Program-made: the position numbers and the translations under genes | Shown here: one piece after another, positions 34,948 through 38,917 of the stretch | Position numbering within the stretch: position 1 is the stretch's first letter | Layout: each line of letters opens with the position of its first letter | Assembly (NCBI GenBank): GCA_021613535.1 | Contig: CP075496.1 | Location: 682,001-746,000 of the forward strand | Direction: 5' to 3' | DNA: 64,000 bases | DNA from: Adineta vaga | Taxonomy: Eukaryota; Animalia; Rotifera | The notes under the pieces: model-generated | What the model was told of the DNA's origin: nothing | The model's input: the letters and a program-made list of their open reading frames with translations, nothing else | Databases searched by the model: none

Positions 34948-37900
34948 TTAATAAGAAGTTTCTTGATCAATAAATGATCCTGGAAATCTTCTAATCATCA
35001 ATTTTCTCCATTCATCATAAACAAACACAAGTAAAGTAAATGGTAATGGTAAAAACCACCAATGTAACCTAAAAAGTTATGTTTATCATAAAAAAAATCG
35101 TTTTTCAAAGAATAATTTACTTTAATGGATACATCATCAAACCACGATTGATATATGGAGTATAGGATAAAATTATTGCTAAGACAGTTTCAAATATAAT
35201 ACTCATATTTAAAACTTGATTTCTAAAAGAAAAAAAATAATCGTCTTCGATATAAATCAATAAGATAAGAGAACATACGACATTCCTTGTCGAAAAAGAG
35301 AATTTCGTCGAGATTTACAACATAATAGAACAGTCCATTGAATAATAACAACTGTCACAAAAAATGCTGTGTGGCATGTATCTTCTAATGCTTTTCGTTG
35401 TTCATAAGACTAAATAATAGTGAATAGATGTTAAATAGAAGAAATGAAAGAAAGACAAACCCATTCTTGTCCATACGAATCTTCAAGATCATTAACTGCT
35501 CTTGAATCCCATGATTTTCGTAATCCTAATAATCTTGATGGTAAAAATCCATTTTCAGCCATAACAACCGTATAAACAAAAAATCCTCCTCCAGCTTGAA
35601 TCATTCCTAATTGTCCATAACTCATCCAAATTAATCGATCTGTAGCTAAATGTTCATGTTTAGCATCTCTTGGTGGTCGTTGCATTATATCCGATTCAGC
35701 TCTTTCATATGCTAATGAAATAGCTGGAAACATATCTGTTCCTAAATCAATACATAAAATTGCGATTGTTCCTAAAAATAAATGTTGAAATAAAAACATT
35801 AATTTTTACAAGAAAAAAGCAATGTTTACCCAATGGTAAAGGAATTTCACCGACCATATAGAATAAAAATGGAGCTAATTCGGGAATTTTGGATGATAAT
35901 GTATAACAAATTGATTTTTTTAAATTATCGAAAATTAATCTTCCTTCTTCAATTCCAGTTATAATTGATGCAAAATTATCATCAAGTAAAATCATATCCG
36001 ATGCTTGTTTACTCACATCAGATCCACTAATTCCCATAGCAATGCCAATATCCGCTTTTTTCAATGCCGGTGAATCATTAACTCCATCACCAGTCACTGC
36101 CACAATTTCTCCTACTCTTTGACAACTTTCTACAATAATTAATTTTTGTTGTGGACTTGTTCTTGCAAAAACAACTTCTTCATGATGTTTAATAACATCA
36201 TCTAATTGTTGTTTATTTAAATTCTTTAAAGTATTTCCATGAATAACACAAGTTCGTGCTGTTTTATCATTAATATTATCTAGAAGTGTTTCTGTTGGAC
36301 TTTCATCTGTTATGATTCCAGTTGCACGAGCAATAGCAGCAGCTGTTAATGGATGATCACCTGTCACCATAAAAATACGAATACCAGCTGAACGACATTT
36401 ATTAACAGCTTGTGCAACATTGACACGTGGTGGATCAATTAAAGAAATTAAACCTAAAAATCTTAAACCAGTTGTTGGAAAATTGAAATTTTCATAATAT
36501 GGATTAACATGAAAATTAATCGTATCACAATCAAATGGAAAACTTTTCGGATATTGATTTAATGGTAAACGATAATCAGCAAAAGCTAAAACACGTTCAC
36601 CAAGATTACCTAAAAATGAGAATGTTTCATTTTTCGTCAAAAGAAATAATTTTAATTTTTACTTAATTCTTTAAATGCTTTTTCATATTCTTTTTTCCAA
36701 AATTCATTAAAATCAAGTTCAGAACCATCAACAAAGATTGTTGAACAATTCTTCAGAATCTTTTCCGGAGCACCTTTCATAACAAGTAAATATCTTTCAT
36801 CATTATCATTTGTTGAATGAATTGATAATTGATAACGATTTGATGAAGAAAATTGTACTTCACAAATCTTTGGATTTATCGTTCGATATGTTGAAACACT
36901 TCCAACCTTAATTTTGATTTCGAATTAAGAAATTAAAAAAAAACAATCAATAAATAACCTACAGTTGCTTCCATACATTTCAACATAGCTGTTTCACTTG
37001 CATCACCTTCACATCGTCGATGAAGAATTGGTTTTAACATATTTTCTGGATCATCTCTAAATATCGCTGTATTACATAACATTGCACATCGAGTTAATGC
37101 TTTCCAACAATGAGAAAATCTTGTATAATTTGATTCTAAAGAGAAGGAAAACAAAAACCGATTTAAAAAAGTAGAAAAAGAAGAAAAAAAGATTATACTT
37201 GATTGAAATGCTTCAATATCAGCATCAATGATATGATTATCAAACCACATATGAGCAACAGTCATTTGATTTTGTGTTAATGTACCAGTTTTATCTGAAC
37301 AAATAACTGTTGTTGAACCAAGTGTTTCAATTGCTTCCAAATTTTTAACAAAACAATTCTTTCGTGCCATTCGTTTTGCAGTTAATGTTAAACAAACCTT
37401 TGAAATTTATAAATTCTTCATTAATCTTCTTTTAATTATTGAATTCACTTACAGTCACAGTTGCTAAAAGACCTTAAAAACAAAAATAGAACGAAGATTC
37501 AACATCTTTTTTTAAATAAAAAAATCAATATTTACCTTCAGGAACTTGTGCAACAATAACACTAATAAGAAATACTACGGCTTCAACATATGTATAACCA
37601 AGTGAGAGAGAACAAATACAAAAAATAACACCAACAACAACAGCAATGATTGTAATAATACGAATAAAATGATTAATTTCAGCTGCAATTGGAGTTTTAC
37701 CCGATTGAACACCTTTAATAAATGAATTTTTTCAAATGAATTTTAAGAAAAAGAAAAGAAAATCAAACCCGCTGTTAAATTTGCAATACGTCCAATAAAT
37801 GTTTTATCACCTGTACGAATAACAACTCCAATACATGAACCTAAATTTCATAAATATAAATCGTTCAAATATAAATAAAAGAATTCTAAACCTTCAACAG

Positions 37901-38917
37901 CAAATGTTCCAAAAAAAGCTAAATTTCTTGTTTCTAATGGATCTTCATTTGTATATTCAATTCCTCGAGATTGTGGTTCTGATTCTCCAGTTAACGATGA
38001 ATTATCAACTTTAAGACCATGTGCACGTATTATTCGAATATCTGCTGGAATTCGATCACCACGTCGAACTTCGACTATATCTAAATATTTATTAAAGATT
38101 TTAATCAAAAACAAATAAGAAAAGAATTTTTCAATTGAGAAACCTCCAACAACAATATTTTCTGGATCAATATTTCTTGATCTTCCATGTCGAACAACAC
38201 ATGCTTAATTATAGAAGAACAAAAAAAGAAATGAATAAGAACAATTTCATTGAAATCCAACCTGCTTGTGGAACTAAATATTTAAATGATTCCATGATTT
38301 TAGAACTTTTAGCTTCTTGATGATAAGAAAAAAATCCAGTAATAATAATAACACTTGCTAATGCTATTCCTAAATACATCTAAAAGATCAACTAATCGAA
38401 TAAAAAATATCAAAATTCAAAAGATTTAAATACAAACATTATCATTTTGTGGATCTTCTAATGTATATAATTCTAAGAAATGTGCAATAAAACAAAGAAA
38501 AGCACCGATCCATAGAAGCATTGCAAAACCACCAAACATATTTTTTGCTAAACGAACAATTTCTGGTGTTGTTCGAGCTGGTGTTAAATCATTTGGACCA
38601 TCTCGTTCAAGAATAACACCTGCACGTTCTTCTGTAAGACCCTTGATAATCAAACTATTCATATATAAATTTCAAAAATGAATATTCCTACCATCGCAGG
38701 AGTCGTTCCATATCTTCGATAAACTTCACTGACTGGAATTTTATGTTCATCCTTAAAGAAAAATCAATGAGAAATAATCAATGAAAACTAAACCAAACCA
38801 ATTCAATTTCATTTTTTAATGCTTCTAAATTATCTCGTGCAGCTGGATTTCTATCACGAAACTAAATAAAATCGAGAAAAATTGATTTATTTTTTAAAGA
38901 AAATCATCTTTTACCAT
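34948..38917 (-). CDS. P2C-type ATPase, Na+/K+-ATPase alpha-like, multi-exon, with atypical ion-site residues
   Basis: [74 protein letters not shown]; C-terminus DQETSY*. The first coding exon appears to be ATG only (38915-38917); 20-nt micro-exon at 37453-37472. Confidence 0.95.

Follow-up and report, generated by a model that had tools for sequence, protein, structure and literature searches.

Can a sodium pump that carries a lysine within its ion-binding sites still exchange three sodium ions for two potassium ions? The question is raised by a gene of the Na,K-ATPase alpha type (P2C) in the bdelloid rotifer Adineta vaga, located at 34948..38917 on the reverse strand of a 64,000-nucleotide stretch of contig CP075496.1 (positions 682,001 to 746,000). 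This stretch is referred to here as the window, and positions are those of the window unless another contig is named. An initial annotation, made from the letters alone, had described the gene as a pump with remodeled ion-binding sites, and there is very little doubt that its product is a P2C alpha subunit whose cation pocket has been remodeled and that the gene is expressed and maintained by selection. As to what the remodeling does, the reading favored here, to which we give a probability of roughly 0.6, is that the lysine serves as a built-in cation, with fewer ions being moved per cycle than the canonical 3Na:2K.

In exon-by-exon structure searches, P2C alpha subunits were the only top matches, with alpha2KK of the brine shrimp Artemia (8k1l) being the best PDB match for both exon 14 and the last exon. 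The NCBIfam profile for P2C pumps, TIGR01106, scored 397 bits on exon 14 alone, far above every other P-type family. Full-length profile and database work used two orthologues (P0001 and P0156), while the window gene itself was searched exon by exon; P0156, from Adineta steineri, is 91% identical to the window model and matched TIGR01106 over profile positions 3-997 with 1542.5 bits, relative to a cut-off of 946.1. The catalytic motifs are found at model residues 200 (TGES), 357 (DKTGT), and 700 (TGDGVND), with the PEG of the fourth membrane segment (M4) at 314-316. The acids of ion sites I and II are likewise kept (E315, E771, D796, and D800, equivalent to pig E327, E779, D804, and D808, respectively). 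All of these had been reported in the initial annotation, and all are present in the spliced model.

Five positions depart from the canonical pump. Ungapped phmmer alignments to pig alpha1 (3wgu_A) equate Gln312 (codon at 37546..37548) with N324, Ser766 (35894..35896) with T774, Lys768 (AAA, 35888..35890) with N776, Val918 (35329..35331) with D926, the carboxylate of sodium site III, and Ser1007 (34954..34956) with Y1015, the penultimate tyrosine. The lysine, valine, and glutamine codons are therefore exactly where they had first been placed. Lys768 also corresponds to N785 of Xenopus. Residues 255-311 of Artemia 8k1l_A align to residues 2-58 of the query, which puts query Q55 (Gln312) on residue 308, a lysine in alpha2KK, and K768 falls on residue 758 (counted along the alignment), the Lys758 of the Artemia paper (PMC10756188). 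In place of the canonical signature of N324, N776, D926, and a C-terminal YY, the window gene has Q, K, V, and SY, respectively; N324, N776, D926, and Y1015 were all invariant in the 23 canonical pumps compared, and the departures are accordingly not random variation. The equivalents of Y771, Q923, W924, T807, and E954 are kept, as is the M7-M8 loop motif SYGQ, by which P2C alphas recognize their obligate beta subunit. A proposed remodeling of M9 was rejected: IFETVLA had been read correctly, but it is lineage-typical in all sampled rotifer and arthropod pumps, the other A. vaga alphas having VFETVLA and Brachionus and a crab likewise having F-E-T, and only the second glutamate (E954) is general across pumps.

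The gene model, derived from three-frame translation of the region, is intact, with 1008 codons plus a stop and no internal stops, divided among 18 coding exons by 17 introns of 47-63 nucleotides (nt), each with GT-AG ends. Contigs of four sequencing runs were placed on window positions 34600-39900 (5301 letters). Two of these contigs, from the runs X10 (3178 nt) and X1 (2263 nt) of different studies, fall into pieces whose ends are exon ends and which differ from the window by 0-2 letters per piece. No public run is on record as RNA for this region, and X1 and X10 were treated as RNA solely on the splicing of their contigs, because only spliced RNA yields contigs bounded by exons; the gene is thus transcribed and spliced, and the expression on which the initial annotation had made its reading depend is found. 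Three coding-region differences in the transcripts were examined, and two of these are synonymous (at L765 and P58). The third, a C for T at position 36213 in the transcript and DNA contigs of X10 and X13, results in K660R, a conservative strain or allele difference in a cytoplasmic domain. The focal codons within the listed transcript pieces, including K768 and Q312, are unchanged, and the agreement of independent transcript contigs rules out an assembly or sequencing error at these sites.

The substitutions have also been retained in other bdelloids. A profile-free search with exon 14 led to a Didymodactylos carnosus protein with SSKIPE and QWTVL, and word searches seeded with the D. carnosus and A. 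steineri proteins revealed orthologues in Adineta ricciae, A. steineri, Rotaria magnacalcarata, Rotaria sordida (two), and the Rotaria species Silwood1 and Silwood2. Q, K, and V are invariant in all of the species found by word search, and the orthologues other than that of D. carnosus have QWTVL and an ETSY end wherever the region is present. In D. carnosus, K and V are present, and the contig begins mid-gene and hence does not cover M4. The focal residues are fixed in this manner despite an overall identity of only 70-93% among orthologues, and the substitutions called in the initial annotation are therefore real, being found in assembled transcripts and orthologues alike. For A. ricciae, the public protein (977 amino acids) is without the M4 motif, its annotation being mis-spliced around a 20-nt microexon; the DNA itself (L044, CAJNOJ010000355.1, nt 2853-2950) encodes VAQVPEG and LLATVT. 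With P0156 as the query, identity remained at or above 84% (74% for one mis-predicted entry of Rotaria sp. Silwood1) and the next values were 63% or lower. Among the best 8000 word-sharing candidates scored, which included canonical pumps of Brachionus and Seison, the Q/K/V type was found in bdelloid proteins only.

Could the gene be a decaying or non-transporting copy, such as a pseudo-pump, a scaffold, or a signaling receptor? Its transcript contigs are less deep than those of putative paralogues, and a genome search of the haploid assembly disclosed no close second copy. However, seven species retain an uninterrupted open frame, and pairwise ratios of nonsynonymous to synonymous substitution (dN/dS) between orthologues, calculated by the NG86 method, are 0.06-0.21, with dS values that look uneven in an AT-rich genome. 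The check on residue conservation and dN/dS proposed in the initial annotation thus points to purifying selection and, together with the conserved focal residues, rules out decay or relaxed selection. As all catalytic motifs and ion-site acids are kept, the gene is spliced and transcribed, and its clade follows the species tree, a non-transporting product of any kind is highly improbable.

The origin of the gene is best viewed alongside its relatives. The A. vaga assembly (100.8 Mb, six contigs) encodes three other Na,K-type alphas, all with VANVPEG, TSNIPE, DLGTD, and ETYY. M8 reads QWADL in two of them and QWAVL in the third, which has the D926V change alone and is referred to here as the AV paralogue. 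This paralogue (C6 at ~1.469-1.473 Mb, near 1.47 Mb; L031/L037, P0179, I4U23_027689) is itself unusual, D926 being regarded as a key site III ligand, and conserved counterparts of it are found in A. steineri, in four Rotaria species, and in metagenome or run assemblies from Logan/JGI (P0191 cluster).

In an IQ-TREE phylogeny (LG+G4, 32 sequences, with Artemia alpha2KK itself outside the tree), the rotifer pumps form a clade, as do the bdelloid pumps within it (99/99). In this tree, of the kind that the initial annotation had proposed, the Q/K/V paralogues are monophyletic (100/100), and they branch internally as the species do, Didymodactylos being basal and Adineta standing opposite Rotaria. 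The stem of this clade is long (0.32, then another 0.32 after Didymodactylos), and the branch lengths inside it resemble those of the canonical paralogues. Its likely sister is the AV clade (support 91/91). A placement outside the AV and canonical clades, within bdelloids, was not rejected by the approximately unbiased (AU) test (p=0.12), and the same test spoke against an origin that predates the parting of bdelloids and monogononts (p=0.035) and against joining the clade to the canonical bdelloid one (p=0.023). In the simplest history, D926V arose first, in the common ancestor of the Q/K/V and AV clades; N776K and T774S, and at some stage N324Q, followed on the stem; and Y1015S came after the Didymodactylos split, later than K and V because the D. 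carnosus tail is ETYY. The gene is a bdelloid-specific Na,K-ATPase paralogue, which underwent rapid divergence once duplicated and has since been retained. No common descent with Artemia alpha2KK was found, and because the clade lies nested among the Na,K-ATPases of rotifers (99/99) and away from those of crustaceans, the M5 lysine is convergent with that of Artemia.

What would such a pocket do? With its catalytic machinery intact, along with the four acids that serve as ligands in the shared sites I and II, the protein would be a functional catalytic subunit. K768 replaces an asparagine that coordinates ions in both of these sites, its M4 partner asparagine being a glutamine, and, by analogy with the alpha2KK structure, its amino group may lie between sites I and II in a salt bridge to the M6 aspartate. 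The sodium-only site III is without its carboxylate (D926V) and, in most species, without one member of the C-terminal tyrosine pair that tunes it. The tethered cation would then permanently fill one of the shared sites, with site III binding Na+ poorly or not at all. The stoichiometry would be 2:1, as in alpha2KK, or one Na+ (or H+) for one K+ without net charge if site III is dead. With fewer ions moved per ATP, such a protein could operate against ion gradients that are much steeper.

Published work on the individual residues is instructive. In Artemia, Lys758 is located between sites I and II, bonded to the M6 aspartate, and in Xenopus alpha1 the positions N333 and N785 are energetically coupled; the N333K/N785K double mutant imports one Rb+ per exported charge, relative to two in the wild type, and hence pumps 2Na:1K (PMC10756188). 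The comparison with alpha2KK made in the initial annotation was correct, Lys758 standing in the K768 column, and it was equally correct that the H,K-ATPases have their lysine one residue earlier, as is seen in the alignments and stated in the same paper. For site III, mutating the D926 equivalent is stated to weaken this site selectively (PMC6746705), and deletion of the terminal tyrosines lowers its Na+ affinity (PMC2812498).

A partnership between the M5 lysine and position 324 can also be read from the wider family. In a sample of 233 P2C proteins, 222 were without an M5 lysine, and 217 of these have Asn at position 324. The five sampled lysine-bearing lineages never do, having Q in bdelloids, M in Clonorchis, M in Darwinula, Y in ATP4A, and S in a metagenomic lineage; Artemia alpha2KK has K (PMC10756188). 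Among the exceptions is a cluster of three P2C-like genes on C6 of A. vaga, which retains Asn. As position 324 covaries with the M5 lysine, the pattern supports the view that Gln312 has a function as putative partner of the lysine, and it fits the energetic coupling measured in Xenopus.

Three of the proteins in this comparison deserve a description of their own. The A. vaga cluster (C6 at ~9.402-9.441 Mb; L034, L035, and L040), whose members are ~45% identical to the window protein, has a lysine at the H,K-ATPase position (YTFTKNLVEL in M5), together with VSNVPEG or VLNVPEG in M4, LQFANL in M8, and the tail RQLTY, and it looks like another remodeled pump family in the same genome. P0187 (GAA48524.1), which we take to be from the flatworm Clonorchis sinensis, is an Na,K-type alpha with VAMVPEG and YTLTSKIPE, i.e., with Lys in the N776 column, while QWADL and ETYY are kept; judged by its sequence, it is an independent case of an alpha2KK-type lysine. 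Finally, P0206, a P2C paralogue of the ostracod Darwinula stevensoni, has VAMVPEG, an H,K-type lysine (YTLTKNMTE), and QWANL; its branch, a long one, is next to those of two canonical pumps from Darwinula.

The same pocket might still belong to an ordinary 3Na:2K isoform with shifted affinities, in which the lysine swings out in the course of the cycle and site III functions even with its carboxylate missing. The equivalents of Y771, Q923, W924, T807, and E954 and all of the site I and II acids are, after all, kept, and the conserved AV paralogue, with otherwise canonical sites, indicates that V926 alone is clearly tolerated. We nevertheless consider an ordinary isoform unlikely. A lysine at the same position fills the cavity in alpha2KK, and the Xenopus double mutant carries one Na+ and one K+ fewer per cycle (PMC10756188); the D926-equivalent mutations cited above selectively weaken site III; and 49 clade-fixed changes at positions near-invariant in the 23 canonical pumps (the five focal ones and 44 more), together with the long stem, point to a changed function and not to fine tuning.

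Several observations do weigh against a built-in cation and a reduced stoichiometry. On its own, N785K costs Xenopus alpha1 ~20-fold in K+ affinity, with the M4 lysine being needed for rescue (PMC10756188). A neutral residue at 926 may still permit a working site III, because most of the ligands are kept and the D926V-only sister is conserved; the initial annotation had regarded this site as lost, and while D926V itself stands, that wording is possibly too strong. The tail change, likewise, is present in the window gene but is not clade-wide: D. carnosus, the most basal orthologue, retains ETYY, so the change is not essential to the function of the clade. Lastly, the k-mer depth of the transcript contigs, a poor measure, is ~1/10 that of many-difference contigs in the same runs, which we take to be canonical paralogues, and this weakly suggests a minor or cell-type-restricted pump.

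A stronger version of the built-in-cation reading can be entertained, albeit tentatively. It has been proposed that a pump, to be electroneutral and H+-selective, needs a tethered lysine as well as a destroyed site III (Young et al., PMC9463140). The bdelloid gene may possibly encode a pump that exchanges ions one for one and is electroneutral (1 Na+ or H+ outward, 1 K+ inward), which would have evolved independently in bdelloids from an Na,K-ATPase, through an alpha2KK-type lysine and loss of the site III carboxylate, although we regard this as rather doubtful. If true, it would realize in nature the recipe (“destroy site III plus tethered cation”) which Young et al. proposed and left untested (PMC9463140), and the AV paralogue, with D926V alone, would be an intermediate step (e.g., 2Na:2K).

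Is the exported ion, then, H+ instead of Na+? A lysine in the shared sites and D926V are both of the conditions predicted for strict H+ selectivity (PMC9463140), yet the lysine is at N776 and not at S775 as in the H,K-ATPases. Other H,K-specific residues are absent, with W924 and C930 kept and M6 reading DLGTD, and the tail is QETSY as opposed to the QELYY of the one gastric H,K-ATPase sampled (deer ATP4A). The isoleucine of the H,K-ATPases is presumably opposite W924. An H+/K+ exchanger is, on balance, not a probable description of this pump, and the lysine as a built-in cation in a pump of reduced stoichiometry remains the preferred one.

With respect to biology, it is plausible that a pump of this kind would serve against steep gradients in very dilute or fluctuating water films. 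A desiccation-specific role, as raised in the initial annotation, is unlikely because R. magnacalcarata, reported to be a non-desiccating species (Nowell et al. 2018), keeps the gene as well. The broader interest lies in the fact that the ion stoichiometry of the sodium pump has long been treated as fixed, with Artemia alpha2KK as the first natural exception, explained by adaptation to brine. The bdelloid pump constitutes a second, independent natural experiment, having the same M5 lysine with a different M4 partner (Gln) and no site III aspartate, and it is conserved across the sampled bdelloids, including the basal Didymodactylos, which are animals of dilute fresh water. Moreover, a single genome with Q/K/V, D926V-only, and canonical copies provides a ready series of natural variants that could be used to probe how sites I and II and site III set stoichiometry, electrogenicity, and Na+/H+ selectivity. 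It also bears on whether pumps of reduced stoichiometry are a general answer to steep gradients and not a brine-shrimp oddity.

The exons, all on the reverse strand, can be followed from the 5' end. An approximate 5' untranslated region (38918..39013) corresponds to the ~100 nt by which the X10 contig extends upstream of the ATG; coverage by contigs is present in the bin 38848-39024 and gone above 39025, which sets the end near 39013-39025. The coding part of exon 1 is the ATG only (38915..38917), followed by a 53-nt intron. A 3-nt first coding exon is also annotated in three orthologues, and because the X10 contig continues upstream of the ATG, it is the tail of a normal first exon. Exon 2 (38799..38861) encodes a short N-terminus without the lysine-rich stretch of vertebrate alpha1 and is followed by exon 3 (38692..38751), exon 4 with M1 (38438..38641; transcript pieces 38438-38640), and exon 5 with M2 (38262..38379). 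Exon 6 (38144..38203) is joined to exon 7 (37892..38080; transcript pieces 37889-38080), which encodes TGES of the actuator (A) domain, and the 38080/38144 joint is seen in contigs of X1, X10, and X6. Exon 8 (37769..37840) precedes exon 9 (37536..37712), which spans M3-M4, ends in VAQVPE-G, aligns to pig residues 271-327, and is covered by transcript pieces 37534-37710 with 0 differences. M4 is completed by exon 10 (37453..37472), a 20-nt microexon encoding LLATVT. The microexon is also annotated in A. steineri and R. magnacalcarata, where exon sizes match from the ATG-only exon through the microexon, and it was found in the A. ricciae DNA.

The 3' part begins with exon 11 (37199..37397; transcript pieces 37199-37395), which bears the phosphorylation site DKTGT, and exons 12 (36963..37135) and 13 (36663..36906) of the nucleotide-binding (N) domain, both of which agree with the transcript. 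Exon 14 (35830..36609) encodes the phosphorylation (P) domain, with TGDGVND, and M5. It is followed by exon 15 (35461..35771), likewise seen in transcript, with M6 (DLGTD), M7, and the SYGQ loop motif; exon 16 (35279..35409), with M8 (QWTVL); exon 17 (35121..35222), with the lineage-typical M9 (IFETVLA, E954 equivalent kept); and exon 18 (34948..35068), with M10, the C-terminus QETSY, and the stop TAA at 34950-34948.

The flanking genes show no evident functional link to the pump. Nearby open frames in the window match a rhodopsin-family G-protein-coupled receptor at 40239-41294 (+) and a pyridoxal phosphate-dependent decarboxylase at 42406-44148 (+), and an open frame at 27330-27818 (-) matches the TTC7 N-terminal domain. 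No beta-subunit gene lies within the window, and the genome has at least seven beta-like (PF00287) loci. Two PF00287 matches (C6:6834703-6835269 and C3:9012918-9013929) are a few kilobases from pairs of P-type ATPase genes (C6:6.839-6.851 Mb and C3:9.02-9.03 Mb, respectively), with the C3 pair having SERCA-like M5/M6 motifs.

Among known systems, the canonical alpha1 (pig 3wgu/3b8e, shark 2zxe) shares with the bdelloid protein ~60% identity over the full length, domain order, the catalytic motifs, E327/E779/D804/D808, and SYGQ, and differs from it by N324Q, T774S, N776K, D926V, Y1015S, the 44 further clade-fixed changes, and the shorter N-terminus of the rotifer pump. The AV paralogue has the same valine at the D926 position, whereas N324, T774, N776, and ETYY are kept and its branches are short. 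The H,K-ATPases (ATP4A, ATP12A; 5ylu, 7x20) are P2C pumps too, with a tethered M5 lysine in the place of a transported cation, and their non-functional site III and electroneutral 1:1 exchange represent the extreme case proposed for the rotifer pump (PMC9463140). However, their lysine is at S775 (TKNIPE), while the window sequence SSKIPE has Ser at 775 and Lys at 776; they belong to a vertebrate branch of their own, and Na,K-ATPases match the window exons better than they do. In the H,K-ATPase of the non-gastric type, site III is disabled by an Ile and an Arg (PMC9463140), and not by D926V as in the rotifer.

Lysine in the N776 column is shared with the Clonorchis protein P0187 and the metagenomic proteins P0012, P0032, P0074, and P0116, which have Met, Ile, or Ser at position 324 where M4 is present. 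These are unrelated lineages, and none of them pairs K776 with V926, a combination for which no other case was seen among the sequences compared; likewise, no paper describing a bdelloid Q/K/V pump was found in the literature searched. The closest parallel is Artemia alpha2KK, in which the same M5 column has changed from Asn to Lys and the M4 partner Asn has been replaced as well. The M4 residue is a lysine in Artemia and a glutamine in the window gene and in every orthologue with M4 available, and Artemia keeps all site III residues and ETYY, whereas the rotifer pump adds D926V, T774S, and Y1015S. Finally, the two hosts differ, Artemia being a brine specialist and the rotifers being freshwater and limno-terrestrial animals.

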